Shown here piece after piece: positions 8,268 to 50,429 of a stretch of DNA of 64,000 nucleotides. A program made the translations under genes and the position numbers. The notes beneath the pieces were generated by a model, which worked only from the letters and a program-made list of their open reading frames with translations, made no database searches and was not told the DNA's origin. Position 1 is the first letter of the stretch; each line of letters begins with the position of its first letter. Location: the sequence record OR545507.1. One strand, given 5' to 3'.

Positions 8268-8741
8268 TCAGTACTGATCAAGTTCAGATGTAAAAATGAA
8301 TGCATCCATGTCTTCCAACGTAAGTTTTAAGTCTGGTACGTACTTAAGAATAACGCACTCTGGCTTCTTAATAGCAGCTTGATAAGCAGCAATGGCAAGG
8401 GATTCCAACTGCTGTGCTGTATAATTTTTACGTTCTGCATTAAAAACTTTGTTTTTGATATCACCACCTGGGAGTTTTTCAAACTCACGCATAACTGCGG
8501 TAAGAACATCGTCAGCAGTGTTACTATATACCCATTGGGGTAATTGCATTACATTATAAATCACACCACTATCATCCATCAAAGAGATCCATTTATATCC
8601 ATCACTCGCACTAAACAAACGCCCTTTTAGTACTGTGTTATTAGTTAAATTTACAAATGCAAAAATATCTTGTTCGTTAAGTTCAATACTATTAACATTT
8701 ACCCAACTCATTACGATTCCCCATTCATAAATCACGAACAA
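8268..8741 (-). CDS. Hypothetical protein (157 aa)
   Basis: ORF track. Confidence 0.7.
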   Translation of the reverse strand: MFVIYEWGIVMSWVNVNSIELNEQDIFAFVNLTNNTVLKGRLFSASDGYKWISLMDDSGVIYNVMQLPQWVYSNTADDVLTAVMREFEKLPGGDIKNKVFNAERKNYTAQQLESLAIAAYQAAIKKPECVILKYVPDLKLTLEDMDAFIFTSELDQY

Positions 8742-9321
8742 TATTCATTAAACACAATTTAGGTTTTATAGCATTCAACACCCATATGCATTCTTTGTAA
8801 GTAGCTATTATATCATCTAAATGCTCAGTTACAATGCTTTCTTGAAAATATTCTTCATCATTGAGCTTTGCTAATTTAGTAACATCACACGTAGGCACTA
8901 TAGGTCTGGATTGTACACCCATTCCATTATTGATATTAGTGAAATGTACAAAATGGTACTTCACAACACCTTTATCTAGATTTACTATACATGACAAGTT
9001 TTCCAACTCAGTTAGTTCTTTACTACAAGTAACATTAATGAAACCAGTATTATAGGCTCTATAATCATCTACTGATATCTCAAAATCATTACGCTGAAAT
9101 ATAAGTGAAATGAGTTTGTCCAGTGGTTTTACATTCATATATTTTAATGAATTTACGTATGATACTTCAATCTTAGATGAAATTATTTTTTTACTAAGTG
9201 CAGTCAATTCTTTATTAGATTTACCTGTTAATACTATAGGTTTAAACCTAGAACTCTTATTTTTCTTTGATACTTTAAAACGACCTTTACGATTCATATT
9301 TTCCTCAATTAATAATTTCAC
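8725..9321 (-). CDS. EExxFQxS family protein
   Basis: NDEEYFQESIVTE near the C-terminus. Confidence 0.7.
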   Translation of the reverse strand: MKLLIEENMNRKGRFKVSKKNKSSRFKPIVLTGKSNKELTALSKKIISSKIEVSYVNSLKYMNVKPLDKLISLIFQRNDFEISVDDYRAYNTGFINVTCSKELTELENLSCIVNLDKGVVKYHFVHFTNINNGMGVQSRPIVPTCDVTKLAKLNDEEYFQESIVTEHLDDIIATYKECIWVLNAIKPKLCLMNIVRDL

Positions 9322-9526
9322 ATTTAACGTGTGGTTTATATAACATAATTAACCCATTTTTAAGTACAATGATTGTTCCTCGGTCAGTAATAGAAACGTT
9401 TTTAATTATACTTTTTTTATATGTTTCAACATATTTCTCTTCGTAATTTATACATTTAACATATTCTTTTTGTTTAGCACTTACAACAGTACTGAATAAT
9501 ATCAGTACAAGTACTATATATTTCAT
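9305..9526 (-). CDS. Small secreted protein
   Basis: MKYIVLVLILFSTVVSA-K signal-like N-terminus. Confidence 0.6.
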   Translation of the reverse strand: MKYIVLVLILFSTVVSAKQKEYVKCINYEEKYVETYKKSIIKNVSITDRGTIIVLKNGLIMLYKPHVKCEIIN

Positions 9527-9543
9527 TACTATACCTTATAAAC

Positions 9544-9574
9544 AAAAAGGAATTCATTTAAGAATTCCTATTTT
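9544..9574 (-). terminator. Intrinsic terminator
   Basis: AGGAATTC/GAATTCCT stem followed by a T-tract. Confidence 0.7.
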
Positions 9575-9578
9575 ACAA

Positions 9579-10509
9579 TCATTTATCTAACATACCATTG
9601 TGTAAACGTTCATATACTTCAGTTCGACGCAAATTCACAATATCTTCTGCGTATTTTAATGTAAATGCCCATGCTTTTGGATGTACGTTAAGCTTCATAC
9701 GAATTCGATTTTTCATCAACTCTCCACTTAAACGAATAAATTCGTGTACACCACGACTACCGTATTCAGTAATTAAATCATTAATGTACATATCACGAAG
9801 AGTTTCATCTGCACATTCTTTAACCATTTCTACGTCAGCGACGATGCTTTCATTAACTGAAGTACTGATCATTTTAATTTACCTTATTTAAATTCGACTG
9901 TAATTTTATCACCTTCAACTACGAACTTACAGTTGTAGCGACGTGCCATATCCATGTACATATGCTCAGAGTACCAGGGAACATCAATAATCGGATGCTC
10001 TGCGTATTGTAGAACTTCACGGTCGCCAACTGTAGTGATGACGAAAGAAATGTTCATCTCTCGTAAAAACAGTTCAGCACCAGGAGAACGATTAATAAAT
10101 TCAGTATCATTACGTAAAGTAAATCCATTATATTGTAATTTAAGCTTCATATGTTATCCTCTATTCAATACCATTCTTTAAAACCATTAAGTTCGGCTAT
10201 GTGAGTAATTATAACACATATAACATTCAGGTCAAGTATAATTTGATCATAATTTAATTTTATACGATCATCATTATATGCCCTAAAGACTACATCGTAA
10301 TCAAAGAAATTTGCGTTTTCATCATTCATTGAAACGATTCGGTATCTACGTCTTCCATCTGTATTGAATATTGTTAAACACTGTTGAAACTTTCTCATTA
10401 ACTGTTTAGATAGGATATTATAATATTCAATATCTTTTTGTGAATTACGTGGGTCATCAGGAAGATAGAATGAAACAAATTTCTTTAATTCTATTTGAGT
10501 TTTATCCAT
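9579..10509 (-). CDS. Three hypothetical ORFs (9579-9872, 9884-10150, 10165-10509)
   Basis: ORF track; co-oriented. Confidence 0.7.
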
Positions 10510-10942
10510 ATATTACCTCATGTGTTTCTCTTTTACTTTGTCGGAACTCATCCTTTGCTTCCTTAACTGACATGATACGAACTAATTTAGCACTACCGCA
10601 ATAGTACTGAACCTGATTACGACCAATGTCTACATGGTGGTCTGGAACTTCATATACAGATATAGCAAACCCAGCACGATGCAATTTACCTAAGTCCATA
10701 GTGAAGAATCTGAACAAATCTTTCAAACTTTGACAGCCAAATACCCATCCACTTTTGATTGAATAGATCCCATCCTCAGTTGGTTCAGGTTGGAATTGAG
10801 AAGGTGTAGTCATGAGCATACGGTCAAATCCATTTTTAGTACTGTATCTGGTTGAATACCGTGCAAACGGACCTACAGTTCGTGCAGGATCTAAGTTAGG
10901 TTCAATGTAACTAAATTTAAGTTCAAAACGATATACATACAT
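10502..10942 (-). CDS. Phage protein of the YRxE...GP[FY]...FG type, function unknown
   Basis: MYVYRFE, VGPF, PEPTEDG, VFGC.S, GF.ISVYEV, GRNQV motifs. Confidence 0.55.
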   Translation of the reverse strand: MYVYRFELKFSYIEPNLDPARTVGPFARYSTRYSTKNGFDRMLMTTPSQFQPEPTEDGIYSIKSGWVFGCQSLKDLFRFFTMDLGKLHRAGFAISVYEVPDHHVDIGRNQVQYYCGSAKLVRIMSVKEAKDEFRQSKRETHEVIYG

Positions 10943-10970
10943 AATTAAAATCCTCTAATTTATTAAGAGA

Positions 10971-11005
10971 ATTATAACAAAAAAGGCTGACCGAAGTCAA
11001 CCTTT
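10971..11005 (-). promoter_or_regulatory. Cassette copy 6 (TTGACT-18-TGnTATAAT)
   Basis: Same hairpin; contains the TGA stop of 10997-11242. Confidence 0.85.
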
Positions 11006-12294: not shown

Positions 12295-12372
12295 AACAAA
12301 CCTCTAACGAGAAATACTTCTGTACTATATATATGTACAGAAGTATTTAATACTATAGAGATATTTTCACTG

Positions 12373-13683: not shown

Positions 13684-14335
13684 TTATTGTATCAAAGATG
13701 TATCTATTTGTACAACATTTATTGTAACTATTTCGTACATATAGTCAGGTGCATTGAACTCAGCATACCACTCAATGATCTCACAGGCAGCATCAACTTG
13801 GTTGTTCGCATTAACACGTCTTGCATAGGTACTAGACATTTTATATCTACCATTTACATACACGTTATATACACCATGACACCACCACATCTTAGTCATT
13901 TATGCTAGGCCATACTTTGTATTGTAAGTTCTGGTATTGAAATTTACCAATTTCATTTTTCTTACGGAATGATTCATCTACTTGAATTTCCGCATCGTAC
14001 TGACCATCAGCCTGTACAACGTACTTAAATTCTTCTACGTGTGAAAAACGTTGACCTTCACCTTCTGGTTTATAGACTTGTACTAAACCTTCAACTAGAT
14101 ATAAATTCATTTATCATTCCTCATCACTTTCAGTTAGCATAATGCTATGTACAGTTTCCACATAGCGGTGTGTTTTGGGTGTGTTATACTTTGTAATTTC
14201 ATCAAACAATTTAAACAGTGCATCTACTTCACTAAGAGCACGAATGAATACATCCATCTTGGTGACTACTCTGGAAAACCCGCGTATGTTATTAAATTCA
14301 GAGACGTGTTCATACACAACATAGTATCTATTCAT
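13684..14335 (-). CDS. Three small hypothetical ORFs (13684-13899, 13892-14110, 14114-14335)
   Basis: ORF track; overlapping start/stop codons. Confidence 0.7.
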
Positions 14336-14850
14336 ATATTAAAAAGTTCCATGAATTCATTGAATAAAGAAGTTCTAATGCACATAACAAATTCAAAGTC
14401 AACATCGATGGTGTCAAGTAGTTTGAACAACTTTGGTACTAATGGATCATTCACCTCAAAGTTATGAATCAAACTTTGTTGAAACACATTTTCTTCAGTA
14501 CTATAATCAATAACAAAATATTCAGCAATACCAGGTGGTGTGTAAACATCATATAAAATATGGCGGTGATGATTTGTTTTAGAACTAGGGGAATATATAA
14601 GTTCTATTTCATAAGATTTATCAGCACTGCGTGCGTAACAAACAATATCAGTACTTGTTATTTCTGAACCATCACTTCTCTCTGAAAAACAAACATCAGC
14701 ATAGCGTTTTCCAGAGAGATTCAAAAGATCATGAGTTGTTTTACCATAACAGAAATCAGTTTCAATGCGTATCACATCTTGATATTCAATTGGTCTTGTA
14801 TCGCGGCGTTCACGATTAAACACTAATTTCAACAACTCATTAATATCCAT
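14332..14850 (-). CDS. EExxFQxS family protein
   Basis: STEENVFQQSLIHNF. Confidence 0.75.
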   Translation of the reverse strand: MDINELLKLVFNRERRDTRPIEYQDVIRIETDFCYGKTTHDLLNLSGKRYADVCFSERSDGSEITSTDIVCYARSADKSYEIELIYSPSSKTNHHRHILYDVYTPPGIAEYFVIDYSTEENVFQQSLIHNFEVNDPLVPKLFKLLDTIDVDFEFVMCIRTSLFNEFMELFNI

Positions 14851-19465: not shown

Positions 19466-20431
19466 TTAGAAATCTTCGTATTCGTACCCTTTTGCAAGTA
19501 CTAGCTTCTTAAGCTTTTGCATAGCTTCACTGTACTTTCGATGTATTGATGAACGGGATTTAACATATTTTCCATTATCATCAACAAAACCATTATCAGC
19601 AATCTCACGAAGCGTTTCAGGTTCATATTCACCTAGACCATGAACACGCTGGATAATCTCACGTTCTTTAGTACTCAATTCGTTAGTCAGTTCATTGATA
19701 GCATAACGTAAAGGTGCACGAATACTATCAACATTGAGGTTAAAATCAGAAGCAGGTGAATGAATAATGTCACCTAGTGTACCATCGGTAACACCGTCTA
19801 ATGGTGCATCCAGAGAAGTGTATTCGCTTTGAAATAACAAACAGTTATTAACATGCTGAATCTCAATCCCAGTACCCTCTGAGATTATTTCAGGAGTTGG
19901 GCGAACACCATGTTTACGCATATATTCCTGGCAGAATCTTTTTACTTTGATCTTATGAACACTCATATAACGTGGGAAGTGTACCATATAGTTAGCGTCA
20001 GAACTTTCGTTATAAACTGTCATGTAAATACTAGAAGAAGCATAGGTAATGAACTTCACATTCTTATTAAGATCAAAGGTTTTTAGTGCTCTCATGAACC
20101 CCTCAACACCATATGAAATCTTATCTTCAAATGGGATATAACAAGTACATTTACTTGCTACATCAATAATAAGTCCATAATTGTAACGAACTAACAGTTC
20201 AGTGTTTTTCTTTACATTGATACCAGCTTGAATATCACGAATTAGATCTTCATTGGAAACATTTGGTGGTCGCTTAAGTGTAATATTATATTTGAAACTG
20301 CTTTGTACTTTACCTTCATTTTCATCTTTATCTTCAACGAAATCTAAGGCTTCTAGTGTGTTGACTTCTTCATTAGCAAAACATTCATCCAGAACTTCTT
20401 CGGCAATTGTATTTAAATCAAGCTTTTTCAC
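19466..20431 (-). CDS. Sigma-70 family RNA polymerase sigma factor-like protein
   Basis: Region 2 (LVRYNYGLI...FEDKISYGVEGFMRALKTFD..KNVKFITYA), region 3 (PTPEIISE, YTSLDAPL) and region 4 (LSTKEREIIQRVHGL...ETLREIA). Confidence 0.9.
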   Translation of the reverse strand: MKKLDLNTIAEEVLDECFANEEVNTLEALDFVEDKDENEGKVQSSFKYNITLKRPPNVSNEDLIRDIQAGINVKKNTELLVRYNYGLIIDVASKCTCYIPFEDKISYGVEGFMRALKTFDLNKNVKFITYASSSIYMTVYNESSDANYMVHFPRYMSVHKIKVKRFCQEYMRKHGVRPTPEIISEGTGIEIQHVNNCLLFQSEYTSLDAPLDGVTDGTLGDIIHSPASDFNLNVDSIRAPLRYAINELTNELSTKEREIIQRVHGLGEYEPETLREIADNGFVDDNGKYVKSRSSIHRKYSEAMQKLKKLVLAKGYEYEDF

Positions 20432-25227: not shown

Positions 25228-26382
25228 ATGTCAAGGTCAATTGCTGCGGCTGGACGCTATAAGTTTGGTGAATGTGGTTATGTTGTTGATGGTGCAATCC
25301 TCAACGATGGAACTAGACTAAAAAATATTAGAATCTATCGCCAAAGAAGCCATAGATTATATGATTTAGTTGATCCCAGAACTAATATAATATATCGTAA
25401 AGTACAAATAACAACTAAAGATAATAAAGGTTATCTATTAAATTACAATAAAACTAATGACCAACTATTAAGTGAAATTAATAAAAATTGTTTCTTTGTT
25501 CGTGGATATTCCGAAGAGCCACAAGAAACTGATACTGGATTTGTATATAAATTCATGCTACATAAAACAATTTTAGGTAGTTCACAAACCTTGTATCATA
25601 TGTATACACCTGAATGTGGTATTATAGATCGTGATATAGATAATATTCTCATTTCACCAGTATTTGTTGGTAATGACTCAATTAGTGGTAAATTATTCAA
25701 CACTGGTTCAGAAATTGATACTAACGGTATGGTAATAACAATCGTATTACCAGACGGGACAGAATACTTTACTACCCAATTTGTTAATGATGCATTTACA
25801 ATTCCAGTTGATGTTATCACACAATCAGGGAAAGGTACTGCTACGCTCACTTCTCCATATTATAACACTAAAGTGGTGGAATTTGATGTTCTTGAAAGTG
25901 GTGAGGATATTGATTTTGTTACATCAGTTCTTCTATCCCAATTTGAACCTGTTTCGGAAGGTGTATTTTCTGCGGTTGTTCCATTTGATGTTCATGATCG
26001 TGGACAGTACTTAGCACTTCAAGCATACAGTGGTGACTTATATCAAGTTGGTGTAGATCTTTCTGTAGACGCAGAAGGTAATATTACTGTGTATCAAACT
26101 GATAATTTACCTGTTTCTTTGAGTATAATCGGAAAAACACTGCATACTACTCCTTTCCATAAAGAATATACTTTAAGTGAGTGGGTTCTCGGTGAAGACT
26201 CTATGTACTCTATCTCAGTTCCAGTAACTGAACATGGTAAAGCACTACCACAAGTTCAATTATATTCTTCAGACAATCATGTAGTTCATAGTGAAATACA
26301 AGTGGATGAAGATGATAATGTAATTCTTAAAGTAGTAGAACCGCTTGACTGCTCAGTCGTAATAGTTGGTTACAACGCATAA
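25228..26382 (+). CDS. Probable late/virion structural protein with two tandem C-terminal beta-rich repeats
   Basis: Only credible plus-strand gene; repeats ...VVPFDVHDRGQYLALQAYS...VDAEGNITV and ...SVPVTEHGKALPQVQLYS...VDEDDNVIL; AATAAATA at 25189-25196. Confidence 0.65.
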   Translation: MSRSIAAAGRYKFGECGYVVDGAILNDGTRLKNIRIYRQRSHRLYDLVDPRTNIIYRKVQITTKDNKGYLLNYNKTNDQLLSEINKNCFFVRGYSEEPQETDTGFVYKFMLHKTILGSSQTLYHMYTPECGIIDRDIDNILISPVFVGNDSISGKLFNTGSEIDTNGMVITIVLPDGTEYFTTQFVNDAFTIPVDVITQSGKGTATLTSPYYNTKVVEFDVLESGEDIDFVTSVLLSQFEPVSEGVFSAVVPFDVHDRGQYLALQAYSGDLYQVGVDLSVDAEGNITVYQTDNLPVSLSIIGKTLHTTPFHKEYTLSEWVLGEDSMYSISVPVTEHGKALPQVQLYSSDNHVVHSEIQVDEDDNVILKVVEPLDCSVVIVGYNA

Positions 26383-26423: not shown

Positions 26424-28961
26424 TTATTTGAAATTGTCACGTAGAACTTCTTCAAGTGTTTTATCTGGATTGCTAATGGCTACATTATAAATCAATTCTT
26501 TAAATGCAGTTAGTGCCTGCTCAGTTGCTTCTGGACCAAAGTTCTCACTAATGCTTTTAAACATACTTTGTGCACGTTCTGATTTGATACAACTAGTTAC
26601 AAACTTGTCAATTTCATTACGAAGCTGCTTAGTTGTCATGTCACCAATGAGCATCTCACTAATTTCTTTTGGTTCATCTGCACTTGTTCGGTCATTCGTA
26701 AAACCAAACACATCATCACCTGAGCCAAAGCTACGTTTTTCTTTTTTAGTTTCTTTTACTGGTTCTTCTTCAACTTCTTGTTCGTATTCTTTAGTAAAGA
26801 GATGAGATAGTACATCATCAAGATTTTTAACCATACCGTCAATACGAGATTCAGCATTCTTGGATACATGTTTGAATGCTTGCTCTAGTGCTTTTTCTTG
26901 AATCTGGTCACGAACATTATTAACTACATTACGAAGTTTTTCATTACAGTTGTCTAAAATTTCTAATACTTCACCAGTTTTGATTTTTTCCAAAAGTACA
27001 TCTAAATCAGATTTTACATGTTGTTTTTGACTTACTTCACCATTAAGAATTGAATTCAATTCTTTAGCACCTTCAACTGCTTCTTCATGTGTTTTAAATT
27101 CAACTGGTACGTCAACACCATCCAGTACAATATTAAGCACTTTACCATCAACGTAGGCGTAGGAGTAAGATGCTTTTTTGAAAGAAATAGTTTTGAAGAA
27201 AATGTTGCTCATATTGATATACTCCTTAATGCCCACTAGCTGGGAAGGTTTTAAACATATAGTGACATTGTACTAAATCATCGAACTTCAAGCCGAAGTC
27301 TTTAGTACCCATCAGTGTGTGGTAAAAATAATGCGAAATTGTATTAGTTTCAGCGTCTTTAATATAGATACCAAATTCGGTACAGCAAAACTGAACAACT
27401 TCATTATAACTTTCTAACTTGGAAATTACAAGTACTTGATCATAAGAATTTTTATCAAATCCAATGATGTACATTTCCTCTGTTTCTGGGTGTACAATCA
27501 TCCCACCGCGAGAAATAATTTTCTCGAAGTTACTGCTCAAGTACTGAATTGTTGAACTTAAGTTCATTTACAACTCCTTACGTATTACTCGTCCGGTAAG
27601 ATGTTCATCTGTACAGAACTTCATTATAAATGCTTTTAGATGGAAGTCTTCTAAAATTCTATATGCTTGCTTTTTCATAACGACTTCCTTCTTCTCCACA
27701 TCAACAATTATATCATGTTTCTCGTGAAGTTCCTGGATCATTTGATATGAATTCAAACTTAGTACGCTCATAACCACCAATGTCCTCCATCTCCCACAAA
27801 ATTTGAACTGCCACTTCTAATTCGTGGTGAATTTGAAAATAACCATTACTTGCAGTATAGATGTAGCCATTTTTAGTAATTGCATAACCCCACTTTTTAC
27901 TTTGAGAATGCATCTCACGTTTCAACCCATAAGGTGATGGTGGCTTCTTGACTGGTTCTGGTTCTCGGTTTTCGTTGTAAATCTCTTGTTCGATTCGCAA
28001 CGCTTTATAATATGAGTATACATGAATCAGGCGACAAAGTACAATAGTAATGCAACAAATAATTGTAAATGTTATCAAGCTCATCAATTTGCCCTCTGCC
28101 TAGATACATATTCATTAATTGCATCTTCCAAATCATACCCTGACATTTTTACATTATCAATTGAAACATGATATTTTTTCAGCACTTTTTGTCCAGCAGT
28201 GTTCTCCCATATAGACCCATCAGGCTCAATATGAACTTTATGGTTCAGGATGAAATCGAACATTTCTTCTTTTGATAAGTTTGCTTTACGGGTTTCAATG
28301 TGATTAGTATTAAGTAATTCACGAGTATGTTTAATGCCATATTCAGTGTGCACACCAACACTACGATGCAAAACTTTTAACTGCTCGGAAGCAGTCTCTT
28401 CATCATAAACATGAATAGTTTCAGTACTATATAAAATATCCTGAATATTACCAGTACTTACTTCTGTCCAAGTGTCTTTGAAATGAATTTTGATTGTTTT
28501 CATGGAAGCTCGTATTAGTTATATGCTGTGAATAGGTCAATGTTTTTATCATCTACACTGATTAATTTACCAGTTGAACTAACAAACACAATATTACCAC
28601 CAGGGGTGATTTGAACACGCTGGTTTACTGAATATTGATCACTAAGGTTATAATTAGCCCATTCAACTACATAACGCTGTTCAACACCGTTAGTATCATA
28701 TAGATAAACGTGTGTAACGTCACGCATTTTTAAACGGTCTAACAGTGTAGAGTTGTCCATGAAATCCGATGGTGTATTGCTGCGTAATGCAATACCGAAC
28801 TCACCGATAACAGTACTAATTGTCAGACCGTTTGAAAAACGGCTACAAAGAGTCTTCTCATCAGCAATATGCATCCATAAAACATTCTTTACATCAATAT
28901 CAACAAATTCACAGTTTTCAAAAACCAAACCTACTTTGGAAACTTTACCATTAAATTGCAT
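26424..28961 (-). CDS. Six hypothetical ORFs (26424-27236, 27226-27567, 27568-27780, 27713-28087, 28084-28503, 28515-28961)
   Basis: ORF track; co-oriented and abutting. Confidence 0.7.
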
Positions 28962-30200: not shown

Positions 30201-30425
30201 CTATATAAGAAAAAAGGCCGATTCATCGAATCAGCCTTAAGTATAACACAGTAGAAGTTAAAAAGTCAACTTCTAAATTACAGCATCCAAGAGGAATAAA
30301 AAGATACTGTTAGAGGGTAACGAATATAATGAATTTGAGGGTAATATCATTATACGTAAAAAAGTGATAGCTTCTATACATAAGGAGGAATCAGTACTGA
30401 CTAGAAGCTATCGGGTTAAACGATT

Positions 30426-30910: not shown

Positions 30911-31694
30911 CTAATTGTGGGTTTTAACCAAACGTGAGACAGCTAGTATAGCATTAACCTCATCCAATGTCAACCCACCAATGTCATTAATCATTGAGTA
31001 CTGAAATAGTGATTCTTCAGTGTAATGGTAATCATGAGAAGCAATAAAGATTGCTGGTTTAGAGGCATCCAAAATTATCTTTGTCATTGTACTATATATA
31101 TCAAATTGATATAATAGATTTTCACCTGTATATGCTACGTAGATATTATTTGAATAGGCTGGATGTACCATTGTAAAACCATCATAACATAATATTTTTA
31201 TGTTCGGATCGTCAAAATTGCCTGTATAAAGGTTATTACAAACATCTTGCATTATACGTACTATTAGACTAGTCATTTAATGGATTTAGTACCTCTTCTG
31301 GAATCAACTTTTGAACTTTAAGTATAGCTTTAATGTCCTCAAATGTTAATCCTAATATGTCGTTAAGGAGGCAGTACTGGAAGAATTTTTCTTCAGTATC
31401 AATATCGTTAACATTCAATTCAATTGATTCATCATCATAATCATAATCTTCATTATCACATTCATAACTTCTGAATATAACTTTTTCAAAATACACATCA
31501 AATGAATAAAAATGATTATTGAATTCATAACCAAGAAAAATATTAAAACATTTACTCAAATCTGTGGTTTGATTCAAATCTGGATCATAGCAAAATACTC
31601 TAACTTCACCAATATCTTCTAATTGTACATCATGCAGTGACCATGCGTTGTTTTTTAATACATAGTTCACCATTTTAACAATGTTGTATGTCAT
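30911..31694 (-). CDS. Two tandem EExxFQxS family proteins (30911-31276, 31269-31694)
   Basis: TEESLFQYSMINDIGGLT; TEEKFFQYCLLNDILGLT. Confidence 0.8.
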
Positions 31695-31700: not shown

Positions 31701-31790
<90 letters not shown>

Positions 31791-31802
31791 AGAAGTAAGA
31801 TA

Positions 31803-31903
<101 letters not shown>

Positions 31904-31955
31904 GCCAAGAGTCGGCATAGGTGCAGCACTACAAAGTTCTTCAAGCTGCTTGGTA

Positions 31956-31987
<32 letters not shown>

Positions 31988-31988
31988 T

Positions 31989-32045
<57 letters not shown>

Positions 32046-32047
32046 TA

Positions 32048-33275
<1,228 letters not shown>

Positions 33276-33296
33276 TTATACCTCTCATTGTTTATG

Positions 33297-33368
<72 letters not shown>

Positions 33369-33372
33369 TAAT

Positions 33373-33980
<608 letters not shown>

Positions 33981-34031
33981 ATAAACCTCACTATACGTAA
34001 CTTACACCATATACGTCTGATTGTGGAATTC

Positions 34032-34056
34032 ATTATATCAGTACTGAACTATTTAG

Positions 34057-34061
<5 letters not shown>
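34032..34061 (-). promoter_or_regulatory. Repeated promoter copy b (TTGACT-17-TATAAT)
   Basis: 23-bp direct repeat. Confidence 0.85.
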
Positions 34062-34470
<409 letters not shown>

Positions 34471-34479
34471 CTTTTTTTT

Positions 34480-34967
<488 letters not shown>

Positions 34968-34990
34968 GGTTTTTAACCTTTAATTAAAAT

Positions 34991-35067
34991 TGGCCGAGGT
35001 AGAGGGACTTGAACCCCCAACCTAGAGATTAGAATTCTCTTGCACTATCCAATTGTGCTATACCCCG
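34991..35067 (-). tRNA. tRNA-Arg(TCT)
   Basis: CGGGGTA/TACCTCG-G-CCA; AGAGA-ATTCTAA-TCTCT. Confidence 0.95.
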
Positions 35068-35071
35068 TATT

Positions 35072-35187
<116 letters not shown>

Positions 35188-35220
35188 ATGTTATGTCCCA
35201 TTATATAATGAATTAATGAT

Positions 35221-35547
35221 TTATGCAAGTGCTTTAGATACACCGACACCAATAATTCCAGTGATATCGATATGGATATTGGCAAGTTGATTACTATCAT
35301 ATGGGTTTGTTTCTGTAATAACCAATGTTGTATCATTGACTAAAACCACAGTACCTTTTACACGATAACCATGTAGTAGTACTTGAACCTCATCTTCAGG
35401 TTTTAATGATTGAATAACTTCAAATAAAGTTGTTTCCATTTTTTGTATTCCTTGTTTAGTTTTGATTATTTGACTTTCTAAATGCCAGTTCGCATATAAA
35501 CCAGGGTTTTCTGGTATCCAAAACATATGACCTGAAAAGATTTTCAT
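35221..35547 (-). CDS. Hypothetical protein (real start probably the internal METTLF)
   Basis: ORF track; GGA RBS precedes the internal ATG. Confidence 0.6.
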   Translation of the reverse strand: MKIFSGHMFWIPENPGLYANWHLESQIIKTKQGIQKMETTLFEVIQSLKPEDEVQVLLHGYRVKGTVVLVNDTTLVITETNPYDSNQLANIHIDITGIIGVGVSKALA

Positions 35548-35639
35548 CTCTTAATATATCATAATGTACCTGACGAATGCCATTCCCAAAGCAGTCATGT
35601 TCTTTATGCTGTTTGGACATCCATTCTTCGTGTGTCATT

Positions 35640-35656
<17 letters not shown>
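35456..35656 (-). CDS. MTHEEW family micro-protein
   Basis: (MYWIHK)MTHEEWMSK...FGNGIRQVHYDIL...WFICELAFR. Confidence 0.75.
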
Positions 35657-35975
<319 letters not shown>

Positions 35976-35980: not shown

Positions 35981-36597
35981 CTATTTTTTATCTCTAATAG
36001 CAAGCTCGTAGATGAACCAGTGGTTGGAATCTTCGTCCAAAACCAATGATTCGAACGTTTTTTTATCGTTCAAAACATCATAATGGCCTTGGCGTATACC
36101 AAATCCAAAATGATCATGTTTATATTTTAGTGACTCTATCCATTCTTCATGTGTCATTTTATGTATCCAGTTCAATTAAGTGTTTCATTTATTCTTCTGT
36201 AAAGAAAGCATTGCAATGGACAATGGAAAAGGTTATTATATTTTTTTGTCTCTAACCGCAAGCTCATAGATGAACCAACGATTTCCATTCTCATCTAGTA
36301 CATATGATTCGAACTTATATTTGTCTCGTAAAATATCGAAATGACCATCAATAAATCCATTTCCAAACTGGTCATAACGTTTTTTCATCATTGCCATCCA
36401 TTCTTCATGTGTCATCTCTTAATATCCATAACGGCTATACTAAAATATGTACCAAAATCATCACAATTGATAATGTTGTTATAGTACTCAATTGGGTTAC
36501 GCAATGATATATACAATTCAAGCTTAAAATAGTATATATCTGCTGCATTTATATTATAGTGTAGATTAAACCACTCATCAAATGTCTTAGGCTGCAT
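35981..36597 (-). CDS. MTHEEW family micro-proteins (35981-36175; 36236-36415, not in track; 36412-36597, divergent TFDEW)
   Basis: MTHEEW...FG.G...GH.D.L.D...FES.VLDE....WFIYELA.RDKK shared by the first two. Confidence 0.75.
36163..36230 (-). pseudogene. Remnant of the 3' end of the 71-aa ORF
   Basis: Reads IVHCNAFFTEE*MKHLIELDT* versus IVHDSAFFTKEEMQHLIVLDT*. Confidence 0.6.
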
Positions 36598-37491
36598 TAT
36601 ATTTATCTTTATAAAAATCCATGATTTTAGTCAACAGTACTGCAATCGTATAATCTAAATCAGGATAAAGTAAATTGTACTGAAATTCTTCCTCAACACT
36701 ATAGTTAGTGGTACAGTACTGGTAATCTTTATAACCTATTGAAAAATAATTCGGATACAATGTACAACGAAAGCGATAAGCTTCATCTGTCATATAATCA
36801 TTGTATTCAACACAGAAGTATAGTGATTTTGAATTTAATTCGATAAGCTCAACGAATCCATCAGGTAATGAATGGTTATAAATTACTGAATCTTCATTAA
36901 ACCATTCATAGTATTTTTCCAAAAAATCACTAATGGATACATCCAGACTTTGTATAGGTGGAGTTATGATAATTTGAACTTCTTTATTCATTTCGACCCC
37001 TTACTATATTTCACGTATGGGTTATCATACAGATCATAACTTTTTTGTGCACGTTCTTTTCGGCGTTCATACATGATTCTATCATACTCTTTAGCTTTCT
37101 GATTTGCTTCATTATACAATTTTAAAATTAGCAAAAATGCATCAAGATCGGGATAGTTTGCCGGATTGATAGTACTCAGCATAAATCGTTCTTCTTCAGT
37201 TCTAGCTAAGTCAAATTCATACTTAATAGTTTTATACCCACTCCATTTATATATATGCGTTACTTTATTAGTAAGTACATTATATTCAACGAAGTCAGTA
37301 CTACCATCAAGTACACGAGTAATCTTAATAGATGTACCAATGACAATCTGCACAGAACTCATTTCTGAAGTTTTAAAGTAATAAATGTTATTACGGCGAA
37401 GATTAACTTCTCGATCTCCAATGCGAACATGCTTAATAACTTCCATTAATGGTTCTGGGACACCACGAATCGGCATGTTAGTATTCCTCAA
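36587..37491 (-). CDS. Two EExxFQxS family proteins (36587-36991, 36988-37491)
   Basis: SVEEEFQYNLLY; TEEERFMLSTIN. Confidence 0.7.
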
Positions 37492-38094: not shown

Positions 38095-38487
38095 TTACCA
38101 GCATGTTTTCATAACTTCTGTGATGTAAATCATTTTATCTTTAAGTTCGTGAGGGATGCAAATTTCACCTGGGTTTAACGTTGTGTTCTTTTGAAACTCA
38201 TCTTCTTCGGAATCAGCCAGGTAAAATGGGTGTGTCACAAAGGTATCATCAACTGTACGCTTATTTGGTTTCATTAATGCATCATGATTTATAAAATAAT
38301 AGGCATCAATATCAGGACGGTAATACAAACAATCAACCTTGAAGTTCGGGTGTAACCATAAAGACAACGAATAGGTCATTTGGTTACCAATTTGTCTTGG
38401 TCCAGTAGTAATTGTATTGATGTTATTTTTATCTTGCACCATTTCATAAATGAAATCTATCATTTCGTGTAGTTCTGATTCAGTCAT
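38095..38487 (-). CDS. EExxFQxS family protein
   Basis: SEEDEFQKNTTLN. Confidence 0.7.
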   Translation of the reverse strand: MTESELHEMIDFIYEMVQDKNNINTITTGPRQIGNQMTYSLSLWLHPNFKVDCLYYRPDIDAYYFINHDALMKPNKRTVDDTFVTHPFYLADSEEDEFQKNTTLNPGEICIPHELKDKMIYITEVMKTCW

Positions 38488-42866: not shown

Positions 42867-43310
42867 TTACTCCTTAAAGTAGATATCACGAATTTGTTTA
42901 ATCATCTCTAACTCTTGAAGTCCTATCATACCAAAGTCTTCTTGTATTGTCAACTGCTGAAAGTACATTTCCTCTAAATTATCATAAGGAATATCCACTA
43001 ATGATAAAGGAACACGTTCACCACGGTATAGCAGATCTTCAACTAAAAGTTTTAAAATCATGATAGAAAATGAATCTTTTTGGATATGAAATTTGTAAAA
43101 TGTCTGGTTAGTACTGAACATTGTATTTGATGGATTGAAACCCATTTCAACAAATACTGTATCTTTATCATTATGTGTGACATATGTACATCTTGAATTC
43201 GCAAGAACTTTAGATTTTGGGAAATAAAAATCACCCATCAACTTCTGTCGTTTCCAATCCTCGTATACAACTGGATGCTTAACCTTCTTCAATTGGTGCA
43301 GTACTGTCAT
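42867..43310 (-). CDS. EExxFQxS family protein
   Basis: LEEMYFQQLTIQE. Confidence 0.7.
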   Translation of the reverse strand: MTVLHQLKKVKHPVVYEDWKRQKLMGDFYFPKSKVLANSRCTYVTHNDKDTVFVEMGFNPSNTMFSTNQTFYKFHIQKDSFSIMILKLLVEDLLYRGERVPLSLVDIPYDNLEEMYFQQLTIQEDFGMIGLQELEMIKQIRDIYFKE

Positions 43311-43690
43311 AGTTTTTTCCAGTCCAATGAATCGAAATCGATTTGCTCAGGATTATCAACAGCGACAACTCGTGCATTATGAAGAGTTTCAAAGTAGCCG
43401 TTCCACGGTGTTCGTAATGGAACTGTCACATCGCCAACTTTAACCAAGAATGAATATTCTGGTGATATTGGGTCAAACCACTCTTTTTGTTTAGCATTTT
43501 CAACGATAGTTTCGTGTTCTTTAGTATAGCAATTATCTTGCTTCATATAAAACACCCAATGCTCTTTTAGGCACTGTAAAGCAGCAACTGCTTCCTCTTT
43601 AGAAGACCATTGAATATCAATTGTATTAAGAACGTCATAACAATTTTCAGTGTCCCCTGTAGTATAATGTACTTCAATGCTGTATTTCAT
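43307..43690 (-). CDS. Hypothetical protein (127 aa)
   Basis: ORF track. Confidence 0.7.
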   Translation of the reverse strand: MKYSIEVHYTTGDTENCYDVLNTIDIQWSSKEEAVAALQCLKEHWVFYMKQDNCYTKEHETIVENAKQKEWFDPISPEYSFLVKVGDVTVPLRTPWNGYFETLHNARVVAVDNPEQIDFDSLDWKKL

Positions 43691-44684
43691 TAATCATCGC
43701 CTTTTAGTAATTTACAAATTTCAATCATATGATAATAACATGTATTCCAAAATTGTCCATTAGTACTTCCAACATCATGCACAGTACTTTGCTGGAACAC
43801 ATATTCATCGTTGAACATCATTTTAATATCATCAATGTAAAATTCTGGTTTTGAATCATTATTGTATTCAATACTCGTTTCACCATCTGGATCAAGTGAA
43901 ATTGATGATATGTCGTGAATTCCTCTCGGATTTGTTGGATAAATTCTCAACGTAAGAGGATAGAAGTCTGGATCGGTTTCATAGGTATATTCGATTATGT
44001 AATAACCATCACCAGTAATTGATTGATATTTAAATGTAGTTTCAATTGAATTTGAGATGTTATATCCCAGTTTCTTTATCTCATGTAGATGTGATAATAT
44101 TTTATGTAAAGATCCTAAAACATGAATCAAATTATCAATTTTCATTTACGATCCTTTGAAAAGTTCAGTTTAAAAGTTTTACCAAATTCCATTGTAGCTT
44201 TACCCAGATTGTTAATATTTTCTTTCAACATTTCTTGCATCTTCCTAATACTTTCAATCCAGGCTTCTTCTTCGATACGAAGAATTGGTCGCAATCGTTC
44301 CTGAATATCGTTAAAACGTGTATTGAGTTCAACCAATGATTCATATGTGAAATCTTTCATATCGATAATAGTACTTCTTTGAAAGAATTCTTCTTCAGAC
44401 AAATTACTTAAAATGATTTTATCACGACCAATAGATAATGTCAATTCATCATCTTTATTTTTTTTAATTACAATACTAATAGGTGTTTTTAATGTAATAC
44501 AAATATCATGATTATTAAATGTTTCAGTTTGGTTTGACATTCTGAATTGAAGTTTCCCAGATAAAGCATGTACTGGTGATGGTTTCTTTTTACCAGTAAT
44601 AACATCTTCCCATGAATCGAGAATATTATTAATAATTTTAACATAAGGAATTGGCATATATGCACCTATGAAAAATCCACGCAA
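43690..44684 (-). CDS. Two EExxFQxS family proteins (43690-44145, 44142-44684)
   Basis: NDEYVFQQSTVHD; SEEEFFQRSTIID. Confidence 0.75.
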
Positions 44685-44699: not shown

Positions 44700-45230
44700 T
44701 TATTCAAGTATAGTAATTTCAATTAAACGAATTTCGATAAACTCGTTTTCAGTTTCCCATGACGTGCCAAATTTCTTTTCAAGTTCAGATTTCACATCAC
44801 TTTTAAATTTTCCCATAGTATTAGGAATAATTTGTTTGGTTAATTTGTCGTAACCACAATAAAACATAGGTTTCTCCCTTCGAGATATTAGCTGAACAAA
44901 ATCTTTTGGATATGCAGGTATGTTATGCATCACTTCATGAATACACTCAGTACTTGAATCTTGTACTTTGTACATTACATTAAGTTTACCTCTGAAATTT
45001 GCGGTCATATCAACAATAGTTCCTTTACCCGATTTAAGTAAAGTTCCATTCTTTGAATGAGAGCAATAAAATACCTCATCACCAATATTAGGATAATACA
45101 AATTAAATTCTAATTCAGATTTTACAGCCAGCCGTTTGAAACTTTCTGTACGTTTTATATAAGTTTGGTATTTGTTTATGTTCAAAAGAATATCTCTCTT
45201 AGTAAATGTGATATAACTGGCATAGTCCAT
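44700..45230 (-). CDS. Hypothetical protein (176 aa)
   Basis: ORF track. Confidence 0.65.
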   Translation of the reverse strand: MDYASYITFTKRDILLNINKYQTYIKRTESFKRLAVKSELEFNLYYPNIGDEVFYCSHSKNGTLLKSGKGTIVDMTANFRGKLNVMYKVQDSSTECIHEVMHNIPAYPKDFVQLISRREKPMFYCGYDKLTKQIIPNTMGKFKSDVKSELEKKFGTSWETENEFIEIRLIEITILE

Positions 45231-46042
45231 CCATTCCCAAGCATTTTGTATGCTTGTGTCTTACTAGACACTTTAAAGAAATCTTCAGGAACACCCTGTA
45301 ATTTACAACATTCTACTACACTTAAGTGTCTATAGTCAATATTTCTTTTGCCATTCTCTAATAGATATTGACGACTGATCACTGGGTCACGAAACACCAA
45401 TTGTCGTCTGGATTTATTAAAGTACTGGTTACAATCACCACCTTTAAAATAGTTAGCATCTATACAGTACGAAGCGGTTCTGTCAGTGTACCAACCATCT
45501 TCAATAATATCTTGAAGTTTAGGTGCATTGGATAATGCAGGTGGTATAAAAAGCTTATCAGTACTGTACCAGTAATATCTCTGCCTGAAGTGAGGCGTAT
45601 AATGCTGGGAGTTTATCAGTACTGGCGTGATTCCTAAAATACTATTAATGTATTCTTTGAAATCTTCCTTCATTTTAACATTTTCAAACAGAAATTTCAA
45701 GTTAGGATTGAGACTTTTGATATGATCAAAAATTTCAACCATTACTAAAAATAACTGCCCACGTATATCATTTAAACCACCCTGTTTACCTGCAACTGAC
45801 CAGGCTTGACATGGGAAACCACCCATTAATAAATCTATTTTATCCCACTCAATATCCCATTCTCTCCACTTAGTTACATCACCCAATTGGATAATATCAG
45901 GAAAGTTAGCTTGAGATTCAGCTATTGCGTACTTGTCAATTTCGGATGAATAATATTTTTCAACTGGGATACCAGCATCTTGCAATGCCATATATCCCAC
46001 ACTCATTCCATTAAAAAGAGAAAGTACTCGGATAGGTTTCAT
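45182..46042 (-). CDS. dcm: DNA (cytosine-5)-methyltransferase
   Basis: Motif I VLSLFNG, EID, GDV, motif IV GGFPCQ, motif VI ENV, RQR, and motif X YKMLGNGW. Confidence 0.95.
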   Translation of the reverse strand: MKPIRVLSLFNGMSVGYMALQDAGIPVEKYYSSEIDKYAIAESQANFPDIIQLGDVTKWREWDIEWDKIDLLMGGFPCQAWSVAGKQGGLNDIRGQLFLVMVEIFDHIKSLNPNLKFLFENVKMKEDFKEYINSILGITPVLINSQHYTPHFRQRYYWYSTDKLFIPPALSNAPKLQDIIEDGWYTDRTASYCIDANYFKGGDCNQYFNKSRRQLVFRDPVISRQYLLENGKRNIDYRHLSVVECCKLQGVPEDFFKVSSKTQAYKMLGNGWTMPVISHLLREIFF

Positions 46043-46685: not shown

Positions 46686-46699
46686 CTTATTACCTTTAG

Positions 46700-49232
46700 T
46701 TAATTGAACTCTACTTCTGGATAATGATTATAGAACATCTCACGAACTGCGTCAAGATGTTCTTGAAATTGTTTTATATCTTCTAATGATGGTGCATCAA
46801 TAACAGTACTAAGTTGAAACAACGATTCTTCTGTGTTATATAGTGACATATCAAATGAGTTATTGTTGTCATCAGTTATGATATTATCACAAATTTCGTA
46901 AGTGTCAATACAAACATCATCAAGTGTTGTATTATCATATACAGTGTATACGAATACAAAAATAAAAGAAGAATGTTCTTTACCATAACGCGGTGGGTCA
47001 TATGTCACATAGCATTTGTGGTCAAATGTATCGAGTTCCATAGACACCACCCCAGCTTCACGATATTCATTAGTTTCACTGGTAAGATCCGGTATTGATG
47101 TTATCGAAAGTAAGTGGAGAAATTTACTTGGATTTAGCATTTCACCACCATTGGATTTTGCGACTGTATATTAAAAAGGGATAATACAAAAGTACTCAAT
47201 TTTTCGAAACAATCTACTAATACATTTAACTCATCATAACTAACACCAATTTCACGAATAAGCGATTGTTGAAAGAATCCTTCTTCGGTTAACGTTAAAC
47301 TACTAACCTCAGTTATGTTATAATAACTGTGGGATGTTGTGGTTGATATTAGTTGTATTGCAATCGTATCTGATGTTGTGTTGTACAGATATAAATATTT
47401 TGTTTTTCTTTCCAATGGATCTATACATGAAAGATCGATCATGTCATAGGTTTTTCCAATAAAAATATTACAATCATCTGACAATTCACAACAAATGCGT
47501 ATATGTTCTTTCGGGTCATGAACACGTTGTGTGTCAAATTCACATGACATTGCAATTTCAAAATGATTTTTTATTTCGTCAACATTCATCTGCACCCACC
47601 ATTAATTCTTATATTTGTATAGTTTAATGCTTTTTTAATAATACCAATTTCTGTAATTCCTATTACATTTTTCTCAATCAATGACAATTGGAATAGTTCC
47701 TCTTCGGAAATATCAATACTGTGGATTCTTGTACAATAATCGTTGAAGTCATATACATATCGTATTGTATAGTCGTTTATAGAAACTGATACAATTGCAA
47801 TCCCATCATGGATGTAAGTTAGTTCATTTGAGTATCTATTAAAAATTAACCTATCTGGTGAACCTATTGGTAGTTGAAATGTATTTCTAGTATCTTGAAC
47901 AATAACAAAATCATCATCTATATTTCTACTCAGAACACCCAAAATATCATATATAGTAGTCATGTTATTCTTTACCTTCAGCAGTTCTGATAATTTTCAT
48001 AACTTCTCTGGATAGTGCGTATATTTTTTTATAGTACTCAAATGTAACTGAACCAAAATCATTAATAGTACTAGCCATGAAGAACGATTCTTCTGTATAT
48101 AGTTCATTTGACAAAGCAACCAGTTCTTGGTGAAATTTTGCGTCCTTCCAATAACGAAATTCAAAAACAAATTGTCCGTCATGACCGACTCTACAACATT
48201 CAGAACGATCACTGTCTACACAGCTAAACACAATATCCCTTTCAGAGTCGTACCAGATATTTCCAATATTTGTTTCAATAACAGCATAATCAATTTTTTT
48301 AGAATTTGGAATTAAACCTTTTTTCACCAGCACTAAACTGGTATTATCAATATCTAGTAAACTTACCATATCAATTCCCCATTACTAAAGTGTTTTTAAT
48401 CTCCAACAATTCACTATACATATTCTTCAATTGTAATATATCTTCAAAAGTAATACCACCAAGATCATCAACTAATGAACGTTGGAATAAAGATTCACTT
48501 GTTTGTAATGTATCTAAATCGGTGATTTTTAATAAAGAACTTGGATTAAGTGTTTCGACTAGTAGTATGTTTTTGTATGGTACATATGTGATCTTGATGT
48601 TCTTTTTATAATTAATCTTATAAAATCGCATAATTGACGATTCATCACTTAGTTGGATAATTGGGTCGTCTTGATCATTAGACCACCATACAGTACTAGT
48701 CATATGATTGACGTGGTGGTTCAATTCTGATATGTCCAAATCTAAAAAATATTTTAGTTCATTGTGTAAATCTAAACTCATAAATTTATCCTCAATGCAG
48801 CATCATCATGTATTGTAGGATAAACCCACAATAATGTCAAGATGTGAAATAATTATACCAGTAATATAGTTCTTTTAATTCTTCAGTACTGAACAATACT
48901 TCTTCTATTGTAGATTGTTGAAAGTGATATTCATCATTTAGATACATAGAAATATTACTATATACTTTCCTATTGTATTGACATAAAAAAGAAGTTTTTT
49001 GATTAATGTATTCCGTAAATGTTAATTTATCTAACTCAATATCGAATGATAATTTAATAATATGACTATTATCATTTACATACATTAGTTTCTTTGAAAA
49101 ATGATCAATTGTAATATATTCTTTATGAGAGAACTGAAATATATTATTAAATTTATTACCATTTGTGCTTCTAAATTTTTCAAGGTAATAAGAAAGTGGT
49201 TTAATTATTGAAGTTCCAATATTGTTCTTCAT
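46700..49232 (-). CDS. Six tandem EExxFQxS family proteins (46700-47140, 47134-47595, 47586-47963, 47965-48369, 48371-48781, 48837-49232)
   Basis: TEESLFQLSTVID; TEEGFFQQSLIRE; SEEELFQLSLIEK; TEESFFMASTIND; TSESLFQRSLVDD; NDEYHFQQSTIEE. Confidence 0.85.
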
Positions 49233-49395
49233 ATATCCTCAATTTTAGATAAGAAAAATGCCCCGAAGATCGGGGCAGTACTAAAATGATTTTGTACCAA
49301 AAGGGGAATAAGAACAAAATGAAAATATAATAACGCATCATTATTATGATGTAAGGGAGGAAAGTAACATGATATGTTAACCATTTCTGGTATAT

Positions 49396-49947
49396 TTATT
49401 TATCATTTAATTCTTTAAGTTGGGTTTGTATATCTTTAGTTATATTTCGAATTTTCTTAAAGCAATAAACACTATCGTCCAATTCGATTTTAAGTTCATG
49501 TGTAAATGCATACAGAAGTTCAGCAAATACTAAATCTTGACGCATCCAGTTTCCATCTTTATATAAAGTCATTACACAATATGGGCATTCACTATTAGAA
49601 GTTTGCTTTCCAATAAAAACACTTTGAATTGATTCATGCTTAAAGCCAATAAAACTTTCATTTATTTTTTTAATTTCAGTACTGATATCGAATTTAGCAC
49701 TGGTGTTGATTGCAAAAATTTTATTCCCACTTTCATCAGTATTGATATTGAGTTCAATATCACTACCTAGTTTACGTACTGCTAGAGTATAAAGAAGTAA
49801 TTCATACATGTCGTAACTTGTTACATTACCATTTGGTGCAATTACATCAACACTAACACCGTGCATTTTTACTTCTGTATTAAATCCATCTTTATCAGAA
49901 AGAAAATCAGTGATTTGCTTTGTAAGGATTTTAATTTGGTCTATCAT
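49396..49947 (-). CDS. Hypothetical protein (183 aa)
   Basis: ORF track. Confidence 0.7.
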   Translation of the reverse strand: MIDQIKILTKQITDFLSDKDGFNTEVKMHGVSVDVIAPNGNVTSYDMYELLLYTLAVRKLGSDIELNINTDESGNKIFAINTSAKFDISTEIKKINESFIGFKHESIQSVFIGKQTSNSECPYCVMTLYKDGNWMRQDLVFAELLYAFTHELKIELDDSVYCFKKIRNITKDIQTQLKELNDK

Positions 49948-49967
49948 ATTTCATTTCCTTATGTGAT

Positions 49968-49992
49968 AAAAGCCTCCATAATGGAGGCTTTT
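49968..49992. terminator. Bidirectional intrinsic terminator
   Basis: AAAAGCCTCCAT-A-ATGGAGGCTTTT. Confidence 0.85.
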
Positions 49993-50000
49993 GTATTTAC

Positions 50001-50429
50001 TTAGAGAGATTCTTCGTATTCAGCAACAATCTCAACCATTTCATTAATGAACTTGATGTGAGAATGTGTCACTGTACGGAAGTCGTAAACAAGTGACTGT
50101 TGGAAAAATACATCTTCATCAAGAGAACCATCAAAGTTCAAATCAATGTTTTCATCGTCATTGCTTGGTGCAACTTTAATATTCAGAAGATTTTCATCAA
50201 CTGCAAGTTTTACAACACAACCCAGTGCAATGGCAAGAACATATGCTGGTTTCTTAGCTTTTTCATTACGGAATGGTGCACGTAGAGCACAAAAAGTACT
50301 GCTAATCTCATCATTTGGTTCTTTGTATTTAACATTGACCATTAGTTCTTCGATTTTGACGCTCTCAATAACACGACCAGTTTCTGGAGCGAAGAAAGAA
50401 TGTTCACGGATAGTTTGTTCGATATTCAT
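50001..50429 (-). CDS. EExxFQxS family protein
   Basis: DEDVFFQQSLVYD. Confidence 0.75.
   Translation of the reverse strand: MNIEQTIREHSFFAPETGRVIESVKIEELMVNVKYKEPNDEISSTFCALRAPFRNEKAKKPAYVLAIALGCVVKLAVDENLLNIKVAPSNDDENIDLNFDGSLDEDVFFQQSLVYDFRTVTHSHIKFINEMVEIVAEYEESL

Follow-up and report, generated by a model that had tools for sequence, protein, structure and literature searches.

A divergent family of small proteins with one conserved motif, encoded in tandem arrays by RaK2-like jumbo phages

The genome of Escherichia phage Sharanji contains a large family of small and mutually divergent proteins, which are encoded in tandem arrays and share one conserved motif close to the C-terminus. 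The family was analyzed in a stretch of 64,000 nucleotides (nt), hereafter the window, which is 100% identical to positions 62,001-126,000 of the record OR545507.1. Sharanji belongs to the genus Asteriusvirus and is a 121Q/RaK2-like jumbo myovirus of ~350 kb. Nearly all genes of the window are located on the minus strand, and its GC content is ~33%. Members were named as a set of open reading frames (ORFs) in an original prediction made from the sequence, and the record labels every one of these ORFs 'hypothetical protein'. They are designated here by their low-coordinate end in the window; since the genes are on the minus strand, their starts are at the high end. We consider it highly probable that the description given below of the family, of how its members are built and of where their genes lie is right.

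All 22 predicted ORFs were found at their positions on the minus strand, encoding proteins of 117-198 amino acids (aa), and every one of them carries the block of acidic residues, Phe and Gln or Met, with a helix-like segment after it. The tandem arrays of two to six members had also been described correctly. The distance from the motif to the C-terminus is 28-80 aa, however, rather than the 25-60 aa that had been noted. Among the 18,792 coding residues, 11 matches to a 10-residue pattern of the motif were found where composition predicts 0.0015, and none of 2000 shuffles had more than one; for a 6-residue core, 16 matches were found and 0.16 predicted. Chance can thus be excluded. Strict matches to the motif fall without exception in minus-strand coding frames (0 in other frames).

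Membership was further examined with profiles. When each member was left out in turn, 21 of the 22 outscored all 257 other ORFs of the window. An external-only profile was built from 129 sequences of Klebsiella phage RaK2, a metagenomic contig and an exhaustive database search, with near relatives of the window members removed; it gives 19 of the 22 ORFs scores of 13.4-47.4 bits, and every other ORF at most 7.3 bits. The three ORFs missed by this profile (33597, 36587 and 38095) possess a motif variant which is one residue shorter before the Phe. In hhalign profile-profile comparison their whole block was aligned at the expected position, with P values from 1e-4 to 1.4e-3. For 15 control ORFs, P was >= 0.01 and only fragments were aligned. 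Judged from these alignments, the three are probably divergent members of the family. The motif-less array neighbours 28515, 28084, 43307, 44700, 37478 and 49396, together with the small ORF 14114-14335, are not members by profile and hhalign. This analysis bears out the prediction of a single real family, as yet without a name, which occurs in tandem arrays and combines a highly variable N-terminal part with a C-terminal block under constraint, and the hidden Markov model check suggested with it did not match unrelated proteins at background rates.

The composition of the motif was determined from 174 family sequences anchored on the Phe, which is offset 0; offsets 0, +1 and +5 are fixed or restricted by the anchoring and carry no independent weight. 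The motif opens with Thr (59%) or Ser (18%) at -5, followed by Glu at -4 (87%) and -3 (87%), a variable residue at -2 (Glu 46%) and a hydrophobic, mostly aromatic residue at -1 (85%). After the Phe come Gln (89%) or Met (11%) at +1, a variable residue at +2, Ser at +3 (85%), Thr (52%) or Leu (41%) at +4, Val, Ile or Leu at +5 (97%), a variable residue at +6, Asp (62%), Glu (15%) or Asn (15%) at +7 and a hydrophobic residue at +8 (80%). Thr at +12 and Glu at +14 open a second helix. The only variable offsets, -2, +2 and +6, are spaced by four residues and thus form one helical stripe, and the other columns are 77-95% conserved. A Thr or Ser cap, an acidic first turn and flanking hydrophobic residues are ordinary signals of a helix start. 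The Phe, Thr/Leu and aliphatic positions would make up a packing face, and the near-invariant Gln and Ser, like the overall strength of conservation, go beyond packing alone.

AlphaFold models were obtained for two members. The model of 47965, calculated from an alignment of orthologues and paralogues, has a predicted local distance difference test (pLDDT) score of 92.3 and a predicted template-modelling (pTM) score of 0.84, and is composed of seven consecutive antiparallel strands (residues 13-87), the motif helix (93-102) and a long helix (110-130). Member 8725, which has the longest N-terminal part (190 aa), was modelled with a pLDDT of 68 overall and 76-93 in the core. Its model starts with a disordered basic tail (1-42); seven strands follow, and then the motif helix (147-156), in register with that of 47965, and a long helix at 160-176. 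An independent BFVD model of the RaK2 orthologue matches the 47965 model with a template-modelling (TM) score of 0.88. The same model is matched, with TM scores of 0.5-0.6 and probability 1.0, by several proteins from 121Q-like and GAP32 phages which are uncharacterised and 14-18% identical in sequence; they are possibly paralogues. A fold search against PDB returned nothing at E <= 0.001, the best chains being p32/gC1qR with TM ~0.3. The models thus predict a single beta7-alpha2 domain with the motif as its first helix, apparently a fold without a detectable solved relative.

These models change the architecture that had been proposed. The original prediction assumed two modules, a variable N-terminal domain for target binding and a constant docking module, but both models show one compact domain to which the motif contributes the first helix, and the extra length of 8725 is the disordered basic tail and not a separate N-terminal domain. 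A common arrangement of seven strands and two helices is predicted for the two members that were modelled, whose alignments had paralogues in common. A loose link to beta-clamp-binding peptides had also been considered. It is not retained, as the motif lies in a folded helix and not in a flexible tail, and the terminal aromatic residue is missing: the position after the aliphatic residue of the motif is variable and not aromatic, unlike in the clamp-binding QL[SD]LF. Nor does the analogy to F-box adaptors extend to membership, given that none of the 22 members has a Pfam domain and the models contain one domain only.

Selection on the family was estimated by comparing Sharanji with Ecwhy_1, also an Asteriusvirus, in which the orthologue of 47965 is ~83% identical. 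The 19 orthologue pairs of the family have a median amino-acid identity of 81% and a ratio of nonsynonymous to synonymous substitution rates (dN/dS) of 0.25, versus 89% and 0.08 for 47 other genes of the region (p = 3e-4, or 0.006 when the ORFs compared are matched in size). Region by region, the dN/dS of the family is lowest in the motif helix, at 0.10 (0.06-0.14), and rises to 0.27 in the C-terminal helix and 0.33 (0.28-0.38) in the strands; orthologues are 88%, 79% and 73% identical in these regions, respectively. The difference between motif helix and strands fits the general picture of a constant element and variable surfaces in the original prediction.

The census of the remaining genome was performed piecewise on OR844650.1, an unannotated genome 99.8% identical to the phage of the window. 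Among the 1,292 ORFs of the window and the rest of OR844650.1, 52 belong to the family at E < 1e-3, all on the coding strand, and with ~15 weaker ORFs included there are ~65-70 likely copies per genome. The family probably takes about a tenth of the genes in a 121Q-like genome. The earlier figure of about 22 members is therefore right for the window but not for the family, which has at least 52 copies per genome. A second cluster holds ~43 copies in ~30 kb, comprising 25 ORFs at E < 1e-3 and 18 weaker ones in which the core is found where it should be relative to the C-terminus; all are on the coding strand. It is also present in Sharanji itself, at the end of the record, with 98.4% identity, and is labelled only as hypothetical proteins there. 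Five further solid copies are scattered elsewhere, at record positions of ~199-200, 213, 253 and 325 kb.

Members were also found outside this genus. A syntenic stretch of 86 kb in RaK2 encodes 15 members at E < 1e-3, 87 kb of Cronobacter phage GAP32 encode 10, and a 20-kb piece of a metagenomic contig encodes 11. When 1.84 billion representative proteins were searched exhaustively with HMMER, 132 clusters were obtained at E <= 1e-3. Most of these proteins are 114-170 aa long, with a median isoelectric point (pI) of 4.8, and the core is located ~36 aa from the C-terminus in 123 of the 130 inspected. A total of 86 clusters resemble the Sharanji and RaK2 members in the block only, and all ten that were looked up come from metagenome assemblies. 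Two long matches stand apart from the rest, namely a DUF11-repeat protein which is unrelated and P0064, which has no Pfam match. The distribution is best explained by a family specific to RaK2-like jumbo phages which has grown by tandem duplication. Some orthologues (P0001, P0004, P0009 and P0021) come from NCBI assemblies filed as 'Escherichia coli', where their contigs measure 348-366 kb; such phage-sized contigs within bacterial assemblies may reflect a carrier state or contamination.

The family was overlooked because BLAST does not link most of its members to one another and PHROGs assigns them to different groups. Only 8 of the 210 window pairs are linked at E < 1e-3, three of them over the full length at ~30% identity. 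In the second cluster 39 of 325 pairs are detectable, and no full-length BLAST link connects a window member to a member of the second cluster. Every window member founds a separate PHROG without known function (24941, 17453, 23322, 24321, 27549 and others). The family is thus divided into many unrelated-looking groups which no resource joins, while weak cross-matches between these groups cover the motif region. A word-indexed protein search with the family profile found close orthologues only. None of the 22 members matches Pfam, NCBIfam or PDB sequences, and none matches the PADLOC models of defence proteins (0/22). A single MutS_IV match (E = 7e-4, below its cut-off, in one of the 22 members) is noise.

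The arrays are located in regions dense in promoter-like sites, defined here as matches to a sigma-70-type consensus at 11 or 12 of 12 positions. The window contains 35 such sites on the coding strand, 12 of them perfect (12/12), against 3.6 +/- 1.8 expected, an enrichment of about tenfold, and one on the other strand. Several lie immediately upstream of members. The stretch of the second cluster is similarly enriched, and a stretch of structural genes has four sites in 50 kb. In the related phage CBB, the equivalent region was read as an early, host-takeover region (PMC5259590). The promoter density, together with the analogy to CBB, points to a family which is probably transcribed early by the host RNA polymerase. 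PA5oct, the only relative in the clade for which RNA sequencing is available, has no members in its early region, and its timing is not transferable. No member in RaK2 carries the label 'virion structural protein', which according to the RaK2 paper was based partly on tandem mass spectrometry (PMC3622015). This speaks against members being virion proteins, albeit indirectly, by way of annotation. The ORF at 50624-50959 on the minus strand (111 aa) does bear this label, in RaK2 (ORF182) and in phage E9.1, and is not a member of the family.

In the explanation proposed here, each member would be a small, usually acidic, single domain made of a seven-stranded antiparallel beta-meander and two helices. 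The motif helix would be its one invariant element, and the strand region would have diverged past alignment in most paralogues. Collectively, the members may form an early, tandemly expanded and diversifying set of proteins which bind to host proteins in the course of host takeover or counter-defence. Each copy would then owe its specificity to the variable surface of the sheet, and the constant helix would act as the keystone of the scaffold and perhaps as a shared functional site. Taken as a whole, we give this explanation an even chance of being right; its functional part, the repertoire of binders, is more tentative, and we consider it less likely than not.

Several observations weigh against this explanation. 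The function is inferred for every member. On the structural side, a BFVD search with the 8725 model found no significant structural neighbour, and the two AlphaFold alignments held the same paralogues, so that the models are not fully independent. Profile-profile comparisons of four members from orthologue-only alignments were not significant (probability <=9%); their alignments nonetheless have the motif at the centre and in correct register. That the strand regions share an ancestor was deduced from their topology, from the similar size of the proteins and from the few pairs linked over the full length at ~30% identity, and burial of the conserved residues from periodicity alone. The conservation of the two Glu, the Gln and the Ser, next to packing partners which are not conserved, hints at more than a structural role. 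Moreover, dN/dS is below 1 everywhere, and relaxed constraint would fit equally.

A rival explanation is a revised form of the original model, in which the helix docks to a common partner of the host or the phage and each paralogue brings its own target by means of the sheet. Glu at -4 and -3, Gln at +1, Ser at +3 and the acidic residue at +7 are 85-92% conserved across the 174 sequences, from several genera, in proteins which are otherwise less than 20% identical, and the motif helix has a dN/dS of 0.10. Stability of a fold alone rarely requires so much sequence identity. On the other hand, the motif is integral to a compact domain, unlike a linear motif of a flexible segment, and its single variable stripe fits a helix packed between the sheet and the second helix. 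The N-cap, the acids of the first turn and the flanking hydrophobic residues amount to ordinary helix capping, no partner is known, and neither an F-box nor another adaptor domain was detected. We regard this model as unlikely. The same doubtful standing is given to a more far-reaching reading, a scaffold-based recognition repertoire loosely comparable to a library of antibody-like or repeat proteins. In it, ~70 paralogues on a beta7-alpha2 fold not seen before would capture different host proteins with hypervariable sheet surfaces, for instance parts of various defence systems in Enterobacteriaceae, and the invariant polar and hydrophobic helix would couple them to a common machine; if this is true, no adaptor-type multigene system for counter-defence would have been described in a bacteriophage before.

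The acidity of the proteins raises another possibility, namely that they are mimics of nucleic acids, or acidic oligomers of the p32/MAM33 type, which soak up DNA- or RNA-binding proteins of the host. Window members have a median pI of 4.7, and 17 of the 22 are below 5, versus a median of 6.1 among the remaining small ORFs (p = 1e-4); basic tails are present in all three members that are basic. The best PDB neighbours, p32/gC1qR, are also acidic and consist of seven antiparallel strands and helices, an arrangement resembling that of the models. The match is weak, though (E = 0.03, best Foldseek TM 0.32, where a match at the level of the fold would exceed 0.5, root-mean-square deviation ~10 Å), and no Pfam MAM33 domain was found. 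Furthermore, members from the second cluster are less acidic (median pI 5.0, 49% below 5), and no solved structure of a DNA mimic was matched. Such a role is quite improbable in our estimation.

Equally improbable to us is that the tandem copies are largely dispensable, have no specific function of their own and fill an enlarged capsid, following the genome-expansion ratchet proposed for jumbo phages. A dN/dS three times that of the neighbouring genes could be read in this way, but a value of 0.25 still denotes purifying selection. Reading frames are intact in all genomes examined, and the RaK2 orthologues of ~30% identity and the matching arrays of GAP32 indicate that copies have been kept across genera. 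A role of the motif as a processing or targeting signal, such as a protease site or a capsid-targeting tag for packaging and injection, is very improbable: the segment is acidic-rich and centred on Gln, loosely resembling the sites of Glu- or Gln-specific viral proteases, and one RaK2 member is encoded near the gene of the head-maturation protease, but a confidently predicted helix within the fold is a poor protease substrate, no member has a virion-protein label in RaK2 or E9.1, and the known capsid-targeting sequences of phages, as in T4, are N-terminal.

Returning to the explanation of a diversifying set of host-protein binders, parallels are found in large eukaryotic DNA viruses, which are well known for expanded families, such as those of ankyrin/F-box-like and MGF type. 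The likeness includes dozens of tandem paralogues, fast divergence on a common scaffold, a variable or early location and a presumed role towards the host. The families differ in that no relation of sequence or fold exists, F-box and repeats are absent here, and the virus is a bacterial one with a single small domain as the unit. Phage proteins of the Ocr, Arn and ArdA types, which block defences of the host by mimicry, are likewise small, acidic, fast-evolving and of early context, but they are single-copy, in contrast to a family of more than 50, and none was matched in sequence searches or in fold searches of solved structures.

Traces of the family can be seen in the literature. A 2017 paper on a phage of the same genus reported tens of tandem small genes, which were read as a product of tandem duplication (PMC5646251). 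This array resembles, and probably is, the second cluster found here. The report consists of one sentence, without a motif, a fold, a family definition, a count or a link to the arrays of the window, and its genes were described as 'very similar', unlike most members of the window and the second cluster. The RaK2 paper states that nearly 10% of the proteins are paralogues (PMC3622015). The family is not described in the papers on Sharanji, phAPEC6 and UE-S1 or in a 2026 review of jumbo phages. As far as we found, no such family occupying about a tenth of the genes of a bacteriophage has been defined or studied previously.

Joining the members into one family accounts for 50-70 'hypothetical proteins' in every 121Q-like genome, in addition to the copies in RaK2-like and GAP32-like phages. 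The analysis provides a profile fit for a family entry and a predicted fold without a solved relative, and the diverged copies on one scaffold point to where the specificity of host interaction may lie. RaK2-like phages are being developed as therapeutics to treat E. coli, Klebsiella and Salmonella, which gives the roles of this tenth of their genes practical relevance. Coordinates of the members, of the predicted promoter-like sites next to them and of the second cluster are listed in Table 1.

Table 1. Family members, adjacent predicted promoter-like sites and second cluster (window coordinates unless stated otherwise; score, external-only profile)
Coordinates	Strand	Feature	Score (bits)	Remarks
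8725-9321	-	Member	13.4	Isolated; weakest robust member; pI 9.1 from disordered basic N-terminal tail; hhalign probability 90%; start annotated at 9297 in source record (190 aa)
14332-14850	-	Member	18.7	Isolated; 172 aa; pI 4.7; hhalign probability 95%
28951-29406	-	Member	35.0	First in array of three; true start probably internal, at residue 16, where the PHROG match opens
29354-29770	-	Member	40.5	Array of three; full-length BLAST link to 30911
29772-30200	-	Member	19.5	Array of three; Leu for Phe at offset 0; hhalign probability 95%
30911-31276	-	Member	36.5	Array of two; ~30% identity over full length to 47965 and 31269
31269-31694	-	Member	36.3	Array of two; very acidic (pI 4.1)
33597-33980	-	Probable divergent member		Shorter motif variant; hhalign P = 1e-4 over 34 columns
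34057-34410	-	Member	38.4	Shortest (117 aa)
36587-36991	-	Probable divergent member	4.7	Shorter motif variant; hhalign P = 1.4e-3 over 34 columns; marginal in leave-one-out
36988-37491	-	Member	25.4	Basic C-terminal extension; pI 9.3
38095-38487	-	Probable divergent member	2.3	Shorter motif variant; hhalign P = 1.3e-3 over 33 columns (own orthologue alignment used)
42867-43310	-	Member	27.6	
43690-44145	-	Member	20.7	hhalign probability 95%
44142-44684	-	Member	37.2	Long C-terminal extension; motif 80 aa from end
46700-47140	-	Member	29.8	Array of six; very acidic (pI 4.1)
47134-47595	-	Member	43.7	Array of six
47586-47963	-	Member	20.9	Array of six; hhalign probability 93%
47965-48369	-	Member	47.4	Array of six; 134 aa; top score
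48371-48781	-	Member	34.4	Array of six
48837-49232	-	Member	26.7	Array of six
50001-50429	-	Member	32.6	One non-member ORF between it and the array
30240-30269	-	Predicted promoter-like site		10/12, extended -10 TG; upstream of three-gene array starting at 30200; terminator-like hairpin just downstream of the site
34032-34060	-	Predicted promoter-like site		11/12; upstream of probable member starting at 33980
34442-34469	-	Predicted promoter-like site		11/12; ~30 nt upstream of member starting at 34410
48812-48840	-	Predicted promoter-like site		11/12; ~30 nt upstream of member starting at 48781
~265,600-295,000 of OR844650.1		Second cluster		Equals 329,996-350,079 of the Sharanji record and onward past the record start

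The arrays of the window are interspersed with genes for a sigma factor, a cytosine methylase and seven transfer RNAs (tRNAs). The RpoD-like sigma factor (19466-20431, minus strand) is kept across the RaK2-like clade as far as Xanthomonas phage XbC2, with 31% identity, and the methylase among the arrays (45182-46042, minus strand) is of the HaeIII type. The seven tRNA genes are found at 31711-35953 on the minus strand; the tRNA-Met is unusually long (90 nt), and a tRNA-Ser of 92 nt was called with the uncommon anticodon ACT. Other small tandem duplications, unrelated to the family, are located at 34481-34967 and 35981-36415 on the minus strand; they consist of three consecutive ORFs of 165 nt (54 aa each) and, nearby, a pair of ~60-aa ORFs with 62% identity to each other. 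Weak paralogue pairs were also noticed on the minus strand, namely 3147/3498 (3147-3836, 25%) and the 514-aa ORF 5979 with the 127-aa ORF 7769 (to 8152, 24%). The sole annotated plus-strand gene among more than 100 minus-strand genes is an ORF of 384 aa at 25228-26382, and a perfect sigma-70 site on the minus strand (25234-25207) abuts its start.

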